A stretch of DNA of 64,000 nt from positions 150,238 to 214,237 of the IMG/VR virus record IMGVR_UViG_3300047548_001122. One strand, written 5' to 3'. Positions 20,435 through 49,436 of this stretch are shown here, piece by piece. The notes beneath the pieces were generated by a model. That model was not told the DNA's origin, made no database searches, and saw nothing but the letters and a program-made list of their open reading frames with translations. A program made the translations under genes and the position numbers. Numbering within the stretch: the stretch's first letter is position 1; each line of letters starts with the position of its first letter.

Positions 20435-20889
20435 TTTCACATAGAGCTAATTTAAACGGTCCAGACCCATCAATCGAAAATAAACCTGAATCAATTGTTC
20501 ACGCTATCGATCAGGGATTTTCGGTTGAGGTTGATCTTCGAATGAAAGATCAAAAACTATATTTTGGACATGATGAAGCTCAATATGAAACTGATATTAA
20601 TTTTTTAAAGAAGTACAAACAATATCTATGGATTCATTGTAAAGAAATGGAAACCATGGAGTTTTGTCTTGAACAGGCTCTACACTGTTTCTGGCATAAC
20701 GATGATGATTATACACTGACAAATTACAGATATGTCTGGGCATACCCCGGAAAAGAACCTGTCGGCAAACTAACGATAATGGTGATGCCAGAAAGGCACT
20801 GGAGTCCAGAAGAAACCCTATCAAAAAAACCATTTGGAGTATGCACAGACTACCCTTATGCGTATCAAGATATTATAAATAAGAGATAA
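20425..20889 (+). CDS. Glycerophosphodiester phosphodiesterase-like protein
   Basis: ISHRAN..EN..VEVDL..GHD..WIHCK..GVCTDY. Confidence 0.75.
   Translation: MFIISHRANLNGPDPSIENKPESIVHAIDQGFSVEVDLRMKDQKLYFGHDEAQYETDINFLKKYKQYLWIHCKEMETMEFCLEQALHCFWHNDDDYTLTNYRYVWAYPGKEPVGKLTIMVMPERHWSPEETLSKKPFGVCTDYPYAYQDIINKR
20874..20881 (+). promoter_or_regulatory. T4 late promoter
   Basis: Exact TATAAATA 33 nt before the 914-aa ORF. Confidence 0.7.
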
Positions 20890-20914
20890 AATAACACTGC
20901 TGTAGAGGCGGAGA

Positions 20915-23659
20915 ATGAAATTTAAAGACTTTCTAACAGAAAAGAAAGAAGTACATGCCGTAATGGCCTTTGGGAGAATGAATCCCATAACTTCTGGCCA
21001 CGAAAAATTAGTCAACGCTGTCAAAAAAGTTGCTGCCAAAGTTGGCGGTTCACATATTATCGCACTATCACATTCTCAAGACCCAAAGAAAAATCCTCTC
21101 ACAGCCGCACAAAAAGTCAAATACGCCAAAGGTGCATTTCCTGGCACAAATTTTGTTGCTGCATCTAAAGACGCACCTACATTCTTTGAACACGCCGAAA
21201 AACTATACAAACAAGGTGTAACACATTTACATATGATTGGTGGTTCTGATCGCGTAGAAGAATATAACAAATTACTTCACAAATATAATGGCACACATAA
21301 AGGTGCTCGTTTCAATTTTAAAACCATCGAAGTACATTCTGCTGGTGAACGTGATCCTGATGCAGATGGCGTCGAAGGAATTTCTGCAAGTAAGATGCGT
21401 GAGGCAGCAAGTAAAGGAGACTTTAATACTTTTAAGAAAGGTGCTCCGTCAACAATGTCAGTCGATCTAATGAAACAAATGTATAAAGATGTACGCAAAG
21501 GTATGAACCTTAAAGAAAGTATTAATGAAGAATTTGAAGAACTTTTGATTGAAGGTGTTCACGACAAAGGTATTTTTAAAGCTGTATTTTTAGCAGGTGG
21601 TCCAGGTTCAGGTAAAGATTATGTATTGAGTAATACACTTGATGGTCATGGTTTAACTGAAATCAATTCTGATAAGGCTTTAGAATTTTTAATGGACAAA
21701 AAAGGTCTCGATAAAAGAATGCCTGCAAGTGAAACGGAAGCTAGAGATAAAGTTAGAGCTAAAGCAAAAAATGTTACAGAGCTTCGTCAAAGACTTGCAT
21801 TACAAGGAAGAAATGGACTAATCATTAATGGTACTGGTGATGATGTTGAAAAAGTAACAAGAATCAAATCTAAGTTGGAAGAATTAGGTTACGACACTTC
21901 AATGATTTTAGTGAATACGAATGATGAAGTATCTGCTCAAAGAAATATTGAACGTGGTCAAAGAGGTGGTCGCACAGTACCAGAAACCATTCGTAAAGAA
22001 AAATGGGACAATGTTCAAAATGCTCGTACTGAATATGCAAAACTTTTTTCTAATAATTATATGGAGTTTGATAACTCCGAAGATTTGAGACAAGCTCCTC
22101 CTGATGTTGTTAAAAGTAAAAAAATGGAGATGATGCAACTGTTTAAAAACGTACAACAGTTTGTTGCACAACCTCCTCAATCACCTGCTGCACAAGAGTG
22201 GGTAGCAAATGAATTAGAACAAAAAGATACTCTTAAACCACCAAAAAATGGTGTTGAACAAGTTGTACCACATGGTTCGAGTGCAGCAGAAGAAGCCAGA
22301 AAATTAGGATTACAATATTATGGTTTCGGTAGATATGGTAAAAACGGAAAAACTACACACCGTTCCATTCATGATAAACTTGTACAAGTTACTGATAAAA
22401 AACCAGAACAACCTAAACTACCTACACCTGGTTCTTCACCAATTTCAAACAAAAAAAATGTTTCAGAAGAAATTAATATTGATGAAGAATTTAACGAAAT
22501 GCTTGATTCTTTAGATGAAGATTTACGTAAATGGTTTGACCCAAAACATCCAGAAGGTGGTTGGAAAAGAATTAACTCTAAAGGTGAAGCTATAGGTCCT
22601 TGCGCTCGTGAACCAGGTGAACCAAAACCAAAATGCATGTCAAACGAAAAGAGAGCTAAGTTGAGTAAACAAGAAAGAGCTTCTGCTGTTGCTGCAAAAC
22701 GCAAACATGATCCTATTGCAGATAGATCGGGTAAAGGTGGTAAACCAGTAAACGTTTCCAATTTTGGAAAAGGTAAATTGTCTGAATCTGTAACAGTTTC
22801 AATTACTGGTGATACTGTTGATGAAGTTAAAGATTTCTTCAACACAATGGGATCAAATTTAAATACAACTACAGAACAATATGCATTATCAGATTCCAAA
22901 AAAGAATTGATAACTCTGGGTAAATTTACTCAACCATTTGGTGAGAAAATGGAAAATACCACCATTACAAATGATATGGTTGAAAATATGCTTGAACAGA
23001 AAGAACCTAATTTACTCAAAGACAAGAGTGGTAAAGTTAGGGTATTCATGTTAAGATCGGTAGCGGCTAAAGAAGCTCATACAAGTCAAGGTACAGTTTT
23101 AAAGTATAAAAACGGTTATGTCGTTAAACTAAAAGAGGAGATTGAAGATGTTGAAGTTTATAAAGGAACTATTCGGAATTGGATTGAAGAATCCAGAAAA
23201 ACATGGATTGGAGGGAGCAACCAGAGCACCCAACGAGGACTTCTCACAGAGAGTGGAACAATATCAAACGGAAGTTCCGAAGGTAGAGGAACCGAAAGTA
23301 GAAGAATTGAAAGTGGAGAAACCAAAGAAGAAACAACCATCCAAGAAGCCTGCGAAAATAACTCCACAACCGCAACCAAAAAAATCACCCTCGCAGAAAT
23401 CAAACAGAGGCAGAAAGCCAAACACCAAAAACAAATCGACGAAATAGATCGAGGTATTGAACCTGGCATATCAATGGCTGGTGCTGGCGAAGGCATCGGC
23501 CGTGATATGGGTGAAAAAATTAAAAAAAGGTCACATAAAGTTACTGTTGTTGAATTAACTGGTGATGAAACAACAGCATCTATTGGTGACCAAAAAGAAG
23601 ATGAGTTAAAGAAAAAAGGTATCTCACTAACTACATTTAAAAAGAGAAACTACATATGA
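20915..23659 (+). CDS. Multidomain polyprotein: HIGH-type nucleotidyltransferase + zeta-toxin/PNK-like P-loop kinase + small modules
   Basis: MKFKDFLTE N-terminus; FGRMNPITSGH..GSDR..ISASKMR; LAGGPGSGK..INSD..RGGRTVP; acidic linkers LKESINEE, LLIE, SLDE, KLSE. Confidence 0.8.
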   Translation: MKFKDFLTEKKEVHAVMAFGRMNPITSGHEKLVNAVKKVAAKVGGSHIIALSHSQDPKKNPLTAAQKVKYAKGAFPGTNFVAASKDAPTFFEHAEKLYKQGVTHLHMIGGSDRVEEYNKLLHKYNGTHKGARFNFKTIEVHSAGERDPDADGVEGISASKMREAASKGDFNTFKKGAPSTMSVDLMKQMYKDVRKGMNLKESINEEFEELLIEGVHDKGIFKAVFLAGGPGSGKDYVLSNTLDGHGLTEINSDKALEFLMDKKGLDKRMPASETEARDKVRAKAKNVTELRQRLALQGRNGLIINGTGDDVEKVTRIKSKLEELGYDTSMILVNTNDEVSAQRNIERGQRGGRTVPETIRKEKWDNVQNARTEYAKLFSNNYMEFDNSEDLRQAPPDVVKSKKMEMMQLFKNVQQFVAQPPQSPAAQEWVANELEQKDTLKPPKNGVEQVVPHGSSAAEEARKLGLQYYGFGRYGKNGKTTHRSIHDKLVQVTDKKPEQPKLPTPGSSPISNKKNVSEEINIDEEFNEMLDSLDEDLRKWFDPKHPEGGWKRINSKGEAIGPCAREPGEPKPKCMSNEKRAKLSKQERASAVAAKRKHDPIADRSGKGGKPVNVSNFGKGKLSESVTVSITGDTVDEVKDFFNTMGSNLNTTTEQYALSDSKKELITLGKFTQPFGEKMENTTITNDMVENMLEQKEPNLLKDKSGKVRVFMLRSVAAKEAHTSQGTVLKYKNGYVVKLKEEIEDVEVYKGTIRNWIEESRKTWIGGSNQSTQRGLLTESGTISNGSSEGRGTESRRIESGETKEETTIQEACENNSTTATKKITLAEIKQRQKAKHQKQIDEIDRGIEPGISMAGAGEGIGRDMGEKIKKRSHKVTVVELTGDETTASIGDQKEDELKKKGISLTTFKKRNYI
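23148..23447 (+). CDS. Nested +1-frame Lys/Pro-rich small protein
   Basis: GAGGAG SD 7 nt before ATG 23148; MLKFIKELFG amphipathic start, VEEPK repeats, basic tail. Confidence 0.55.
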   Translation: MLKFIKELFGIGLKNPEKHGLEGATRAPNEDFSQRVEQYQTEVPKVEEPKVEELKVEKPKKKQPSKKPAKITPQPQPKKSPSQKSNRGRKPNTKNKSTK

Positions 23660-24183
23660 AGTCATTTACTCAATTCATAAACGAAGAAGTTGAAATTCTG
23701 GATGAAATGCCTGGTGCCAATATGGACACCAGAGCGGTTCATCAACATCTGAAAAAACAAGGATGGAAATTAACCAGAAGTTCTGGCAATCATGATGTGT
23801 TTACTCATCCAGATGCTAAACATCACATTCCCGTTCCTCGTCACAAACAATTGAAAGCTCCTTTAGTTCGTGGTATCTTAAAACAAGCTAAAGTAAATGA
23901 AGAAGTTGAATTGGATGAAACTGCTGCATGGCAACGTAAAGAAGGTAAAAATCCTGAAGGTGGATTAAACCGTAAAGGTATCGAATCGTATCGCCGTGAA
24001 AATCCTGGTTCTAAACTATCGATGGCTGTAACTACTCCTCCATCAAAACTAAAACCAGGTTCAAAGGCTGCAAAGAGAAGAAAATCCTTTTGTGCAAGAA
24101 TGGGTGGTATGCCTGGTCCAATGAAGGATGAAAAAGGTCGTCCAACAAGAAAAGCATTATCTTTGCGTAAATGGAACTGCTAA
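23656..24183 (+). CDS. Capsid-targeted two-module protein: HicA-family toxin domain + KSFCARM module
   Basis: MKSFTQFINE; LKKQGWKLTRSSGNHDVFTHP..IPVPRH..LVRGILKQA (HicA); EEVELDE linker; AAWQRKEGK..RKSFCARM..LRKWNC. Confidence 0.8.
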   Translation: MKSFTQFINEEVEILDEMPGANMDTRAVHQHLKKQGWKLTRSSGNHDVFTHPDAKHHIPVPRHKQLKAPLVRGILKQAKVNEEVELDETAAWQRKEGKNPEGGLNRKGIESYRRENPGSKLSMAVTTPPSKLKPGSKAAKRRKSFCARMGGMPGPMKDEKGRPTRKALSLRKWNC

Positions 24184-25497: not shown

Positions 25498-26904
25498 ATG
25501 TTTCAAGACAAACTAACAAGAGAAATTGCTGCAGCTGCTGCACAAATCAAAACAGAACCACCAAAGAATGAAGTTAATTCTGAGTCTGTTGAGGGTGCAG
25601 TCGTTTCTGTTATGACGAATGAAGAACTAAAAGGCAATCAACACAAGATTGATGCTAACAAAAACGGCAAAGTTGATGCACATGACTTTAAACTTCTTCG
25701 TGCCAAGAAAGGTAAAACGGTAGAAGAAGGCATTAAAGGTGCTGGTATAGGTGCTGCTGTAGGTTCTGTTGCTGGTGGACCGATTGGTGCAGCAGTTGGT
25801 GGTGCTTTGGGGCATGTAGCAGGTGAAGTTCTATCAAGTGCTAAGAATAAAACAAAAGCTATGTATCGTATTGCAAAAGGTCCTTCGATGGCCGACAGCA
25901 AAATAAAGAAAGAAGAAGTTGAAGAACTCGATGAATTGTTTGGAAAAGGTAAATTACCAGCAATTGCAGCATATCACAAAGAAAAAGGTGCTGAAGCTAA
26001 AGGTAAGATGGAAACAATTAGAAGTGGTAACACTAAACTTCCTGTTCCAAAATCTACATCTGCTAAAATCTTTTCTAAAGATGCTGAAGCTAAATATCAT
26101 TCAACTCAGGAGAAAAGAGCAAAATCTTTGATGAAAAAAGAAGAAGTTGAATCCGTTGAAGAGGGATTTGGTGATCTAGTTAAAGGTATTAAACGTGTCG
26201 TTGCCGGTAAAAAGAGTCCTAGTGCCGTAAGAGATGCACACTTAGCAAAATCTGCTTTTAGTACAGATCCGAAAGTTAAAGAGCGTGAAGGTCGCCGTTA
26301 CGATAAAGTGGATAACTTCATGATGAAAAAAGAAGAAACGGAATTGGATGAAGCCTTTCCAACTGTAGCTGATGCTAGAAAACGTATGGCTGCAAAAGAA
26401 AGTGGTTTCGAGAAAAAGAAAATTTCTACTGGTACAGTTTACTCACGTAAGTATAAGGCAGAACCAGAAGAGAATGATGAAGCGCCAAAGAAAAAGGCCA
26501 AGACCATGAAAGAAATGTTGAGTATCTATTCAGCAGGTGGCGCCGAAGCTTTGGTAGAAAATCTCATGATCGAAGAACCATCACAAGATGAATATAAAAA
26601 GGAAGTTGAAACTGCTCAGGCAAAAGCTGACGGTAAAATTCGTAACGATAAAGGTATAGCTAAAGCAGCATCACAGGGTGTAAAGATGGAAGAAGTTGAA
26701 ATTGAAGTTCTTGATGCAGATGAAATCAATGGAGTTCAGATTGACAATATTGAAGAGCGCCACATGACTGATGCTGAAATGGATAAACGTGAAGAAATCG
26801 TTAAGTCAATGAAAAAAGGTATTCAAGGTTTCAAAGATCGTTATGGCGATAAAGCAAAAAATGTAATGTATGCTACTGCAACCAAATTGTCCAAAAAGGA
26901 TTAA
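25498..26904 (+). CDS. Modular polyprotein with repeated KKEEVExxxE linkers (putative head internal protein)
   Basis: EF-hand-like DANKNGKVDAHD, glycine zipper and several basic modules separated by acidic linkers. Confidence 0.7.
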   Translation: MFQDKLTREIAAAAAQIKTEPPKNEVNSESVEGAVVSVMTNEELKGNQHKIDANKNGKVDAHDFKLLRAKKGKTVEEGIKGAGIGAAVGSVAGGPIGAAVGGALGHVAGEVLSSAKNKTKAMYRIAKGPSMADSKIKKEEVEELDELFGKGKLPAIAAYHKEKGAEAKGKMETIRSGNTKLPVPKSTSAKIFSKDAEAKYHSTQEKRAKSLMKKEEVESVEEGFGDLVKGIKRVVAGKKSPSAVRDAHLAKSAFSTDPKVKEREGRRYDKVDNFMMKKEETELDEAFPTVADARKRMAAKESGFEKKKISTGTVYSRKYKAEPEENDEAPKKKAKTMKEMLSIYSAGGAEALVENLMIEEPSQDEYKKEVETAQAKADGKIRNDKGIAKAASQGVKMEEVEIEVLDADEINGVQIDNIEERHMTDAEMDKREEIVKSMKKGIQGFKDRYGDKAKNVMYATATKLSKKD

Positions 26905-26906
26905 AC

Positions 26907-28334
26907 ATGAAGAAGATGTCTGACGTTTTCAAATCCATTCGTTTTGCCAAAATGGACCCAAAACACGATAAGCCCGAAATTGGTGGTTCGAAAGATGACG
27001 AGGAACATTATACTGTTGGTGAAAAGGAATATGAACAACAGGTAAAACATGTAAAAAAGCGTGCTATGCAAGAAGAAAAGAAAGACAAATATGATGAAGG
27101 TGAATATGACCGAGAAGGCGATATGGCTAAATCTGATCTTCGTTCTATCATTGCAAATGCAAAAAGATTGCATGATATGATCGAAGATTCGGCTAACCTT
27201 CCTGAATGGGTGCAGTCTAAAATTACTGTTGCTGAAGATTATATTTCTACAGTTGCTAATTATATGACATCAGAAATGAGTGAAGGGGTATCTGATAAGT
27301 TGTACAAATCTCATCAAGATTTGCGTAAGAAGAGTGGGTTACCTCATCCCGATTACTACAAAGCATTAGGTAAATCTTATGACATTGAAGATGATAAAGA
27401 ACGCCTTACACATCAATCTGAATTAAAGAAAAAATATGGTGTGAAAGAAGAGGTTGAACTTGAAGAGTCCTCTAAATTTGCAAAAATTTTTGATAAGAGA
27501 GTCAAACAAAGAGAACTCAATAAATTACCTAAAGAACCAAAAGGTGAATATGAACGTAAAGTGGACAAGTATTTGAAGAAGAAATATAACAAAGAAGAAG
27601 TTGAACTTCAAGAAGGTCGTCCATCACAACGCCATCCATTAGAGGGTCATGAGTATCACAAAAAGTCTAATGAAGAATTGATTGGTATTGCTAAAGATGC
27701 ACATGCGGCTGCTGAAGCAATGAAGGGTCACAGTACCAGAGCAGAAAACAAATATCGTGACCAAGCAAATGATTCTGCAACAGTACGTTATTTCCGACAA
27801 AAGAGTGGTATGCCTGACTGGTACAAAAAGAAGTATGGTCATGTCAAAGAAGGAGTAGAACTTGAAGAGGGTTTACAACAAACTCTTAGAAAAGTTGTTC
27901 CTGGTTATGCAAAGAAACAAATAAACGATAAAATGGACCGTGAAAAGTTTGGTAGAAGAGATGTGGATAAAGACGAGAATTATTATCGTTATAAAAAAGT
28001 CCTCGACAAATTAAAAAAAGAAGATGTTGAACAATTAGAAGAAAAGAATGTTCCAACTTCTCCAGAAAAATGGGCTCAAGCCAAAGCACAAGCAAAGGCC
28101 AAGTTTGACGTTTATCCTTCTGCCTATGCAAATGGTTGGGCTGCAAAGAAATATAAAGCAATGGGTGGTGGTTGGAAATCAGTCAGTGAAGAATCTATTT
28201 TAGAGTCTCGTAAGGCTGAAATTGTCAAAAAGATAGTTAAGAGTAAAAAAACTAATAGTGATGATAAATTTGAACCTAACCCTATCATGTCGAAAGATGA
28301 AGATAGGGGCAGAGATAACATAAATAACAAGTAA
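26907..28334 (+). CDS. Modular polyprotein with repeated KEEVELxE linkers (putative head internal protein)
   Basis: EGDMAKS..LPEWVQSKIT module, HPLEGHEYH module, YPSAYANGW..GGGWK module; four KE(E/G/D)VE(Q)LxE linkers. Confidence 0.7.
   Translation: MKKMSDVFKSIRFAKMDPKHDKPEIGGSKDDEEHYTVGEKEYEQQVKHVKKRAMQEEKKDKYDEGEYDREGDMAKSDLRSIIANAKRLHDMIEDSANLPEWVQSKITVAEDYISTVANYMTSEMSEGVSDKLYKSHQDLRKKSGLPHPDYYKALGKSYDIEDDKERLTHQSELKKKYGVKEEVELEESSKFAKIFDKRVKQRELNKLPKEPKGEYERKVDKYLKKKYNKEEVELQEGRPSQRHPLEGHEYHKKSNEELIGIAKDAHAAAEAMKGHSTRAENKYRDQANDSATVRYFRQKSGMPDWYKKKYGHVKEGVELEEGLQQTLRKVVPGYAKKQINDKMDREKFGRRDVDKDENYYRYKKVLDKLKKEDVEQLEEKNVPTSPEKWAQAKAQAKAKFDVYPSAYANGWAAKKYKAMGGGWKSVSEESILESRKAEIVKKIVKSKKTNSDDKFEPNPIMSKDEDRGRDNINNK
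28319..28326 (+). promoter_or_regulatory. T4-type late promoter
   Basis: CATAAATA before ORF 28359. Confidence 0.5.
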
Positions 28335-42624: not shown

Positions 42625-43263
42625 GTGGCCACGATTGGTTTATTTGTTCAACACCCTAAATGTTCAGTTCAATCGTGCAATGGTATAATCAAAGCACTTG
42701 GATCAGATTACACATATAAATTATTTACTAAACATGAAATCGAAAACGACTTTTTCAATTCTGTGGACCTCGTATGCTTTCCTGGTGGTGTCGGTGATAG
42801 TGATGCTTATGACACATATTTTAAATCTAATGGGCGTCTTATCACCGACTACATCAAAAATGGTGGAAGATATCTTGGTATCTGTATGGGTGCCTACTGG
42901 GCTGGTCCTGATTATTTTAATATTTTGTACGGATCCAGACCAACGCAATACATCAAACGACCAAACACTTGCACAAGAAGGTCATATTCAAAAGCAGTGG
43001 AATGTAACTGGAATGGCACACAAGATAGATTCTTCTTTTACGATGGACCTGCATTTGTCGGAAATTCAGAATACTTCGAAACAGTTGCACGATATAAAAA
43101 TGGTGACGCAGCAGCAATAATTCAAGGAAATATAGGTTTAATTGGTCCACACTTAGAAGCAGAAGAGTATTGGTACGATAAACCATATTTGCACAGACAT
43201 TGGAATGAAGGCAGACATCATGGTTTGTTGAAAAAATTTGTAGACAAATTAATGGAGAAATGA
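42625..43263 (+). CDS. BPL_N-like class I glutamine-amidotransferase-fold protein
   Basis: FPGG, YLGICMGAY (nucleophile elbow), GPHLE. Confidence 0.75.
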   Translation: MATIGLFVQHPKCSVQSCNGIIKALGSDYTYKLFTKHEIENDFFNSVDLVCFPGGVGDSDAYDTYFKSNGRLITDYIKNGGRYLGICMGAYWAGPDYFNILYGSRPTQYIKRPNTCTRRSYSKAVECNWNGTQDRFFFYDGPAFVGNSEYFETVARYKNGDAAAIIQGNIGLIGPHLEAEEYWYDKPYLHRHWNEGRHHGLLKKFVDKLMEK

Positions 43264-48132: not shown

Positions 48133-48530
48133 CCTGGACACATAACGGCGTAGAATTTACTTCTGAATTGGCCGAAGGTTATTTTGGTTTCGTATATTTA
48201 ATCACTCATACTCTTACCGGCAGAATGTATGTCGGTAAGAAGTTCTTTACTAAATCTAAAACAAAACAAGTTAAAGGTAAGAAAAAGAAAATCAGAGTAG
48301 AATCTGATTGGGCTGATTATTATGGTTCAAATGAACAGTTAGCAAATGAAGTAAAGGGAAAAGAATCTGAATACACTAGAGAGATTCTTCACCTCTGCAA
48401 ATCAAGGTCGGAATGTTCCTATTGGGAAACTTGGGAGATTTTCAATAGGCACGCTTTACTTAAAGAAGAATACTACAATCAATGGGTTTCTTGTAAGATT
48501 CGGAAAAATCACGTATTAAAACGTGATTGA
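48129..48530 (+). CDS. GIY-YIG family nuclease
   Basis: GFVYLIT..MYVGKK..YYGS..REIL..E..YYN. Confidence 0.8.
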   Translation: MTWTHNGVEFTSELAEGYFGFVYLITHTLTGRMYVGKKFFTKSKTKQVKGKKKKIRVESDWADYYGSNEQLANEVKGKESEYTREILHLCKSRSECSYWETWEIFNRHALLKEEYYNQWVSCKIRKNHVLKRD

Positions 48531-49436
48531 ACCTGCGCCTGTAAATTTATAGTATGTGTAACCATCACCAGGAGTTGTAATTGTTGGTGATCCTGTAGTT
48601 GATGCTTGAAAAGCAGTTCCCAAATGTCTGACTATAATTACACCCGAACCGCCATTACCGCCGCGACCGGCAGCACTGTTATTACCTGCACCACCTCCGC
48701 CGCCGCCACCTGAATTGGCGCCACCCGCACCACCTGTACCTACTACTCCCGCACTACCAGTACCACTATTTCCACCATTCGAACCCCCAGTACCACTTCC
48801 TGCAGCTGCGCCACCGCCGCCGCCACCTCCATTGCCGCCGTTACCGCCAGTACCACTGTTAGACATACCAGCACCACCTCCACCACCAGCATAATATGTA
48901 GATCCACCTGAAGGCCAAACCTCACCTATGCCGCCGGTACCACCAACAAAAGCAGAAGCCGGAGTTTGTCCAACAGCGCCTTTGCCGCCACCGCCGGCAG
49001 ATTGATAGGTGCCGCCGCCGTTATTACCTTGGCCGCTTGTGTTTGTGCCCGCTGTTGCGCCGCCACCACCTGAGCCTCCAGAAGTTGCTGGACCTGCCGC
49101 ATCGGCACCTTGACCAGCACCACCACCTACAGCAGTTAAAGAAAAACCAGTGGTGTTTGAACCATTTGTTCCTCTTGTTGCGTTTGATGATGTTGTTCCG
49201 CCGGCACCTACTGTAAAACTATAAGTTCCTGATGGACCACTTATAGTTCCTGTCAACATACCACCAGCACCGCCACCACCACCCGGACTGTAGTTAGTTA
49301 CTCCACCGCCGCCTGCGCCGCCGCCGGCAACAACTAGATAATCTAATGATGTTGGTCTTCCAGAAGGATTTGCAGTATTTCTTTTATTAAATCTTTGTTC
49401 TCTGAAAGACTGTTGAGTAAATGCTTTGATTGACAT
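48516..49436 (-). CDS. Glycine-rich virion appendage protein
   Basis: YLVVAGGGAGG..YYAGGGGG..GGSGVIIVR..YKFTGAGSITF; GC-rich. Confidence 0.75.
   Translation of the reverse strand: MSIKAFTQQSFREQRFNKRNTANPSGRPTSLDYLVVAGGGAGGGGVTNYSPGGGGGAGGMLTGTISGPSGTYSFTVGAGGTTSSNATRGTNGSNTTGFSLTAVGGGAGQGADAAGPATSGGSGGGGATAGTNTSGQGNNGGGTYQSAGGGGKGAVGQTPASAFVGGTGGIGEVWPSGGSTYYAGGGGGAGMSNSGTGGNGGNGGGGGGGAAAGSGTGGSNGGNSGTGSAGVVGTGGAGGANSGGGGGGGAGNNSAAGRGGNGGSGVIIVRHLGTAFQASTTGSPTITTPGDGYTYYKFTGAGSITF

Follow-up and report, generated by a model that had tools for sequence, protein, structure and literature searches.

The 64,000-nt stretch analyzed here (the window; positions 150,238 to 214,237 of IMG/VR virus record IMGVR_UViG_3300047548_001122) belongs to a 214-kb T4-like phage from fresh water. 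It carries a 914-codon gene, within which a second, 99-codon open reading frame (ORF) is located in the +1 frame. An in-frame TTG at 23142 would extend the small ORF to 101 aa, but the ATG at 23148 is the start conserved in relatives. The features of the locus are as follows.

20874-20881 (+): TATAAATA, the T4 late-promoter consensus, 34 nt before the ATG of the host gene
20915-23659 (+): host gene, 914 codons, comprising a CTS-like N-terminus (MKFKDFLTE), a cytidylyltransferase-like domain (aa 7-204), a P-loop ATPase-like domain (aa 210-433), a phrog_727-type domain (aa 476-626) and a C-terminal module split by the cassette
23129-23137 (+): main-frame L-K-E, the 5' junction motif of prohead-protease type
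23135-23140 (+): Shine-Dalgarno site GAGGAG, 7 nt before the nested ATG
23138-23443 (+): main-frame spacer of 102 codons, S/G/T/E/R-rich, between L-K-E and I-D-E
23148-23447 (+): embedded gene in the +1 frame, 99 codons plus TAG (23445-23447), starting MLKFIKELFGIG and ending KNKSTK
23148-23189 (+): codons 1-14 of the embedded gene (MLKFIKELFGIGLK), a conserved, predicted amphipathic helix resembling the MinD membrane-targeting sequence KGFLKRLFGG
23202-23225 (+): codons 19-26 (HGLEGATR), possibly the window's form of the family motif HPLDG(A/P)TR, with 5 of 8 residues identical
23382-23402 (+): codons 79-85 (K-S-P-S-Q-K-S), the tail core, overlapping main-frame K-I-T-L-A-E-I
23435-23443 (+): main-frame I-D-E, the 3' junction motif, directly before IDRGIEPG
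23444-23659 (+): conserved C-terminal module of the host protein (IDRGIEPG...KKKGISLTTFKK), which was used to find relatives

The late-promoter consensus is one of only 3 matches in the window and is present at -41 to -48 in most relatives; the host gene probably has a late promoter. In contrast, no such site was found within 150 nt upstream of the nested ATG, and TATAAAAA at about 23113 is not conserved. The small protein has the make-up described in the sequence-only reading, with an N-terminal helix (AF2 residues 2-14), a P/V/E/K-rich middle and a basic last third (+11; whole protein pI 10.1, net +13). AF2 gave two helices and otherwise low confidence (pLDDT 63). PHROGs and NCBIfam gave no family for the nested protein, and the best look-alikes in the ESM Atlas scored 0.86 to unnamed phage clusters, which was uninformative. 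Likewise, tblastn of the nested protein and of the host C-terminal region against 50,697 phage records gave no match.

To assess whether the ORF could have arisen by chance, synonymous codons were resampled. With the main protein held fixed, the +1 frame stayed open over the span in 0.9% of trials for the window, in 0.1-3% for most relatives and in 10.8% for one. With the nested protein held fixed, the main frame stayed open in 0 of 5000 trials in every locus. The +1 ORF with its ATG and Shine-Dalgarno site is present in 18 of 24 viral contigs and in 48 of 52 assessable metagenome loci, and nearly all of the latter have AGGAG at 7 nt or GAGGA at 5-8 nt before the ATG. Among 59 distinct versions from uncultured phage contigs, neither the nested nor the main frame contains a stop, while the third frame has stops in all 59. 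The region is T-poor (0.13 against 0.25 for the gene), but given the stops in the third frame, this alone does not explain the openness.

In three clades, the most variable codon position moves from main position 3 in the flanks to main position 1, which is nested position 3, in the overlap. Nested-frame dNN/dNS lay at 0.43-0.52, with values of 0.48 [0.33-0.67], 0.49 [0.29-0.82] and 0.52, while the third-frame control gave about 1-1.9. However, this statistic alone is only moderately discriminating, as 5-13% of equally long control windows elsewhere in the gene reach values as low. Main-frame dNN/dSN was 0.98, 0.41 and 0.48 in the overlap, against 0.07-0.29 in the flanks; in the window's own clade, a value of 0.98 faces 0.21-0.29. 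Pairwise identity across all 59 versions was only slightly higher in the nested frame (0.225) than in the main frame (0.209), and both readings are largely disordered. Nevertheless, the nucleotides of the tail core are almost invariant at all three codon positions, with S80, S82, K84 and S85 of the nested protein invariant, whereas nested third positions are the most variable in the HGLEGATR segment.

Interestingly, ten relatives lack exactly the block of Shine-Dalgarno site, ORF and stop, and their big protein reads KLKE|SIDKG. In the versions carrying the cassette, [LIV]xE occurs within 10 codons before the ATG in 55 of 59 and directly before (S)ID.GIEPG in 51 of 59. The genome holds homologues of T4 gp17-gp23, including the gp21 protease, with tblastn hits for gp21, gp22, gp23 and gp20 at 126-132 kb. 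T4 ipII and ipIII begin MKTYQEFIAE, which compares with MKFKDFLTE in the host gene and MKSFTQFINE in the next gene. The bracketing motifs fit excision of the spacer by the prohead protease, in which case the mature pieces of the big protein would be the same with or without the cassette, although cleavage is so far only inferred. The 5' L-K-E motif and the Shine-Dalgarno site are, moreover, encoded by the same bases, so the conservation of each is confounded with the other.

A profile search of 1.84 billion representative proteins found 23 small proteins of the same family. Six that were looked up are stand-alone genes with their own AAGGAG site, and their other same-strand frames carry 1-10 stops. 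Alignment of nested against stand-alone members by hhalign gave 97.8% (E 7.8e-13 over 29 N-terminal columns), and an HMM built from stand-alone members alone found the window's ORF as the only hit in the 214-kb genome (E 9.2e-9). No second copy of the family was found in the genome or in the flanks of cassette-less loci. The window's own N-terminus (FIKELFGIG) and HGLEG motif fit the family consensus less closely than many relatives do; many embedded relatives have HPLDGPTR, and some clades lack the motif. Gene callers discard ORFs embedded in longer ones, and the embedded-type copies among the 23 proteins that we traced were called on short or low-coverage contigs. As a possible second case, the alternative-frame ORF 42698-43120 inside 42625-43263 was checked, but it has no family and a hydrophobic nonsense sequence and is probably a chance ORF.

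Taken together, these data indicate that 23148-23447 is very probably a real protein-coding gene lying wholly inside a larger gene, even though no translation of either frame has been demonstrated and no RNA run was found to hold the phage. Ribosomes are inferred to start independently at ATG 23148 on the same mRNA, using the GAGGAG site, and to make a 99-residue basic protein. The sequence-only reading had proposed true dual coding, with the polyprotein frame running through an independent small gene as a disposable spacer between cleavage sites, and each part of this is supported as far as sequence comparison can go. It had not recognized that the N-terminus looks like a MinD-type membrane-targeting helix, nor that the embedded gene is probably the older partner. 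The latter is inferred from the distribution of the family, which other phages encode as ordinary stand-alone genes. The host frame crossing it would then be a young, nearly unconstrained low-complexity spacer that selection merely keeps free of stops. However, a tree of the host N-terminal domains, one clade of which has a different N-terminal domain, did not resolve whether the cassette was gained or lost.

The function of the small protein can only be inferred from its architecture. The N-terminal amphipathic helix (hydrophobic moment 0.53, and 0.31-0.76 over residues 2-12 in 13 relatives) resembles the MinD membrane-targeting sequence, while the lysine/arginine-rich tail would bind nucleic acid or acidic lipid. 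We therefore tentatively propose a peripheral-membrane tether or coat for DNA, working like Noc or phi29 p16.7. This guess rests on short-motif resemblance and, taken on its own, is doubtful; the genes next to stand-alone members show no consistent theme. A less likely alternative, which leaves the dual coding untouched, is a small basic internal head protein of the T4 IPI-III kind, carried into the prohead with the host protein by a capsid-targeting N-terminal helix and neutralizing packaged DNA with its basic tail. Its size (56-111 aa), pI (9.5-10.9) and lysine content resemble T4 ipII (100 aa), it is embedded in and followed by genes with CTS-like N-termini, the genome has the gp21 protease and the gp22 scaffold, and CTS-bearing internal proteins are diverse among T4-like phages (PMC9026906). 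The window's protein also has I-K-E at residues 5-7, but the glutamate is not conserved among relatives (MMRFFKG, MFKALIN, MLKALVN), which read FKG, LIN, LVN or IKS at that place. Furthermore, the N-terminus matches the MinD sequence better than MKTYQEFIAE does, no other protein in the genome shares it, and stand-alone members sit outside head modules, next to UvdE, PhoH, ClpS and HSP20.

Explanations that dispense with independent initiation, with the gene itself or with the 914-codon ORF appear very unlikely. Programmed frameshifting from the host frame, giving a truncated host protein with a basic tail, could be suggested by the shared strand and the A-rich region with an A7 run at 23378-23384, and frameshift products appear to be common in phage structural genes. 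However, a +1-frame stop (TAA at 23130-23132) lies just upstream of the Shine-Dalgarno site, so a shift would have to occur inside the cassette, no conserved slippery site was seen in the alignments, the ATG and an AGGAG site at fixed 7-nt spacing are conserved in nearly all versions, and the stand-alone homologues begin at the same Met. A by-product of a T-poor, low-complexity linker would agree with the base composition, with the dNN/dNS values of the control windows and with a third frame that is also open for 30-79 codons in parts of the region, but it is contradicted by the resampling, the conserved start and Shine-Dalgarno site, the codon-position shift and the non-repetitive motifs shared with stand-alone genes. 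An assembly or sequencing error joining three separate genes is the most remote possibility. One related contig (L102) shows the three pieces as separate calls, but it has 1x coverage and a frameshift upstream of the cassette. The host frame is open across the cassette in 59 independent assemblies, which chance would not give, and the source run covers the stretch with one contig at a depth of about 160 with no differences, while independent samples differ by net indels of 15 nt.

A more far-reaching scenario is possible, but less likely than not: a pre-existing, free-standing phage gene was engulfed by a neighboring long ORF that reads through it in another frame, and the nonsense spacer is removed by the prohead protease at sites duplicated on either side of the cassette. 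Such protein-level 'splicing' would let a small-gene cassette sit inside, and come and go from, a virion polyprotein gene without harming it, and would be a new way for phages to carry cargo genes. Noteworthy, the same family occurs stand-alone and embedded, and the same host gene occurs with and without the cassette, which makes the locus an unusually clean natural experiment on how dual coding constrains each partner and how overlaps arise. The case also shows that a conserved protein family can hide inside a longer gene in dozens of large phages.

Among the closest known systems is the unnamed family of small phage proteins (MFxFLKxLFG...HPLDGATR...basic tail). Its 124 clusters, widespread in aquatic phages, are all labelled 'hypothetical protein' without a Pfam family, and they share the N-terminal helix, possibly an HPLDG-type motif, the proline-rich middle and the basic tail. 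The members looked up are single-coding genes, whereas the window's copy is embedded and carries a KSPSQKS tail core that is doubly constrained by the host frame. The FLK(K/R)LFG(G) pattern is shared with the E. coli MinD membrane-targeting sequence (PMC5471200), and as in B. subtilis Noc (PMC4331003), the helix is N-terminal and followed by a variable spacer and a part likely to bind nucleic acid. This resemblance covers 8-10 residues only and is not homology of whole proteins; the MinD helix is C-terminal, and Noc binds DNA through a ParB-type fold instead of a disordered basic tail. The host gene and its downstream neighbor resemble the capsid-targeted, gp21-processed T4 internal proteins and Alt (PMC9026906, PMC3012670, PMC5694885) in their N-termini and in (L/I)-x-E motifs at domain junctions, but the host protein is a 914-residue chain of enzyme-like domains, its packaging and cleavage are inferred, and the nested protein itself lacks a conserved cleavage glutamate. 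In its layout, the locus is comparable to the Rz/Rz1 spanin genes of phage lambda, where Rz1, with its own ribosome-binding site, would likewise lie in the +1 frame of a larger gene. There is probably no sequence or functional relation, the product has no lipoprotein signal, the gene is not in a lysis cassette, and here the embedded gene has stand-alone homologues while the host frame across it is a nearly neutral spacer rather than a functional domain. Finally, as in viral overprinting, where a de novo gene arises inside an older one (PMC8227390, PMC3494269), two same-strand frames encode two proteins, and one partner is disordered, compositionally biased and weakly constrained. However, the polarity appears reversed; the short embedded gene is the widespread, probably older family and the novel, weakly constrained reading is the piece of the long host ORF that crosses it.

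The virus record of 214,237 bp, of which the window forms the last 64 kb, carries direct terminal repeats, and homologues of T4 gp17, gp18, gp19, gp20, gp21 (prohead protease), gp22 and gp23 were all found at 121-132 kb of the genome. The window itself encodes a T4-type DNA polymerase, helicase, primase and ribonucleotide reductase, and the virus is therefore a large T4-like phage, present in sequencing runs from freshwater metagenomes. The GC content of the window is about 0.34, and nearly all long ORFs lie on the + strand. The only long minus-strand ORF (48516-49436) is located in a GC-rich island (0.44 against about 0.34) with reversed GC skew and matches only phrog_2295 (unknown function); it may be a mobile insert. 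The sequence-only reading had placed a complete small gene with its own Shine-Dalgarno site in the +1 frame of a longer gene, and its coordinates proved to be exact:

20915-23659: the host gene, an ORF of 914 codons that stays open across the nested ORF.
23135-23140: the Shine-Dalgarno site GAGGAG.
23148: the ATG of the nested ORF, 7 nt after GAGGAG, in the +1 frame of the host gene.
23445-23447: the stop codon TAG of the nested ORF, giving 99 codons.

As the overlap is T-poor (0.13 against 0.25), which lowers the number of stops in every frame, each frame was tested against the other. With the main-frame protein held fixed and synonymous codons resampled from the phage's own usage, the +1 frame stayed open over the span in 0.9% of trials for the window and in 0.1-3% for relatives, with 10.8% in one short version. 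With the nested protein held fixed, the main frame stayed open in 0 of 5000 trials in every locus. A second long same-strand alternative-frame ORF in the window (42698-43120 inside 42625-43263; 140 codons, TTG start) showed no family match and a hydrophobic, nonsense-like sequence, and is probably due to chance.

A scan of viral contigs with the host C-terminal region gave 24 loci, and a scan of metagenome contigs with the conserved C-terminal module gave 62 more. The +1 ORF was present in 18 of the 24 viral contigs and in 48 of the 52 metagenome loci where the site could be assessed. It is 55-111 codons long and, in nearly all cases, is preceded by AGGAG exactly 7 nt, or by GAGGA 5-8 nt, before the ATG. 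In 59 distinct versions, neither the nested nor the main frame has a single stop, while the third frame has stops in all 59. Variants of this stretch were also found in independent freshwater and fish-gut samples, with net length differences of 15 nt, a multiple of three.

In three separate clades, the flanks showed the usual pattern with main-frame position 3 as the most variable (for example, 0.36 against 0.13 and 0.09), whereas in the overlap the most variable position became main position 1, which is position 3 of the nested frame. An OLGenie-style count gave nested-frame dNN/dNS values of 0.48 [0.33-0.67], 0.49 [0.29-0.82] and 0.52 (the last not significant), while the third frame, used as a control in the same bases, gave about 1-1.9. 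Main-frame dNN/dSN rose from 0.07-0.29 in the flanks to 0.98, 0.41 and 0.48 in the overlap. However, this statistic is noisy, as 5-13% of equally long control windows elsewhere in the gene reach values as low, and we consider it moderate support only. The motif-level analysis agrees: around the start and the HPLDG motif, nested third positions vary most, and in the tail core the bases AAATCACCCTC are almost invariant at all three positions, as is expected if nested K-S-P-S and main K-I-T-L are both constrained.

Interestingly, the ORF behaves as a clean cassette. Ten relatives (loci L019-L024, L042, L047, L048 and L061) lack it, and in L019 and L023, the two whose junction was read, the big protein runs ...GYVIKLK-ESIDKGIEPG..., and the missing block there is exactly the Shine-Dalgarno site, the ORF and the stop. 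In one clade that carries the cassette (L007-L012, L015 and L018), the cytidylyltransferase-like domain of the host gene is replaced by a different N-terminal domain (MKFSQFFQEAKGQPKVIVVYGGGFQ...), while the CTS-like start, the C-terminal module and the embedded gene are kept. This points to domain shuffling within the host gene, and the cassette therefore travels with the C-terminal module, not with the enzymes, although the tree did not resolve whether the cassette was gained or lost. A leader sequence just before the host ATG (20894-20914, ACTGCTGTAGAGGCGGAG) is nearly identical in every clade, including the one with the different N-terminal domain, and may be a translational operator or an RNA element.

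Searches of family libraries, isolate phages and the ESM Atlas gave nothing for the small protein. However, a profile of 33 embedded versions, searched against 1.84 billion representatives, found 23 small proteins. Some of these are the same embedded ORF, called on short contigs, but six that were looked up (profile hits P0012, P0014, P0015, P0016, P0021 and P0023) are ordinary stand-alone genes in other phage contigs of up to 378 kb, each with its own AAGGAG site and with 1-10 stops in their other same-strand frames. A word search with their alignment found 124 clusters, all labelled 'hypothetical' and without a Pfam family. In the source sample (run X2), another contig matches only the first 34 nt of the nested gene (23148-23181), with a different AAGGAG site in its upstream flank and a downstream flank encoding ...APY..., and is probably a stand-alone family member from a different phage in the same water. 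The only recurring neighbour seen was a UvdE (UV damage endonuclease) gene on the opposite strand, which lies next to, or one gene from, the stand-alone member in two unrelated large contigs (L095 and L100).

The family reads M-F-x-F-L-K-(K/N)-L-F-G, then HPLDG(A/P)TR-A-x-E, then a proline-rich middle, then a basic tail. Alignment of embedded against stand-alone members with hhalign gave 97.8%, E 7.8e-13 over the N-terminal 29 columns, and an HMM built from stand-alone members alone found the window's ORF as its only hit in the 214-kb genome, at E 9e-9. The embedded gene is thus a member of a wider and more diverse family.

The host protein carries, in order, a cytidylyltransferase-like domain (aa 7-204), a P-loop ATPase-like domain (aa 210-433), a phrog_727-type domain (aa 476-626) and a C-terminal module; in Pelagibacter phage HTVC008M, the first two domains are separate adjacent genes. 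The host protein starts MKFKDFLTE, which resembles the start of T4 ipII and ipIII, MKTYQEFIAE, the capsid-targeting sequence that is removed by gp21 after Glu-10 (PMC9026906; PMC5694885). The sequence TATAAATA, which appears to correspond to the T4 late-promoter consensus, lies 34 nt before the host ATG and occurs only 3 times in the window against 7.4 expected from shuffles, which fits avoidance of stray late promoters. Noteworthy features were also observed downstream:

23656-24183: the next gene, starting with a near-copy of the T4 capsid-targeting sequence (MKSFTQFINE), followed by a HicA-like toxin domain (phrog_353, aa 22-82) and a C-terminal '...RKWNC' domain shared by many PHROGs; a toxin-like domain apparently addressed to the capsid.
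25498-26904 and 26907-28334: two long ORFs with no clear family, punctuated by repeated K-(K/E)-E-E-V-E-L-x-E motifs that fit (L/I)-x-E protease sites; candidates for multiply cleaved head polyproteins.

With regards to the proposal of the sequence-only reading that the polyprotein frame runs through the small gene as a disposable spacer between cleavage sites, the main frame carries (L/I/V)-x-E at the cassette junctions in 55 of 59 versions on the 5' side and in 51 of 59 on the 3' side, and the cassette-less junction is KLKE|SIDKG. If the protease cuts at both motifs, the spacer is released and the mature pieces equal those of cassette-less relatives. This remains an inference, however. The 5' motif shares its bases with the Shine-Dalgarno site, so its conservation is confounded.

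All versions of the small protein share one architecture, consisting of a 12-14-residue amphipathic helix, a variable disordered middle, and a last third with a net charge of +8 to +11 in all but one of the 13 versions scored (+3 in the version from L006), with an overall pI of 9.5-10.9. The N-terminus of many members (FLKKLFGG) is nearly the E. coli MinD membrane-targeting sequence KGFLKRLFGG (PMC5471200), and the layout recalls Noc, whose weak N-terminal amphipathic helix, spacer and DNA-binding part recruit DNA to the membrane (PMC4331003). We tentatively suggest a peripheral-membrane protein that binds nucleic acid or acidic lipid through its tail. Alternatively, the product could be a small basic internal head protein whose helix serves as a capsid-targeting sequence, but this appears less likely still, since the cleavage glutamate is not conserved and stand-alone members lie outside head modules.

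Other explanations for the nested ORF itself were considered as well. Access to the +1 frame by frameshifting instead of initiation is unlikely, as a +1-frame stop lies just before the Shine-Dalgarno site, the ATG and its spacing are conserved, and homologues are stand-alone genes that begin at the same Met. Chance openness is contradicted by the resampling, by the 59 of 59 versions without stops and by the family match, while an assembly artefact is contradicted by 59 independent assemblies and by the source-run contig, which covers the stretch at a depth of about 160 with no differences.

Taken together, the nested ORF is confirmed and its interpretation as a dual-coding gene within a spacer is supported, with translation, cleavage, packaging and function all inferred in the absence of transcript, ribosome or protein data for this uncultured phage. 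Embedded same-strand overlapping genes are known, but the present one is unusual in that it behaves as a clean cassette, that it may be tolerated because the host protein is cut on both sides of it, and that it appears to be the older partner. As the reading without relatives is the host-frame spacer, we infer that the long ORF came to read through the small gene, which is the reverse of classical overprinting (PMC8227390, PMC3494269).
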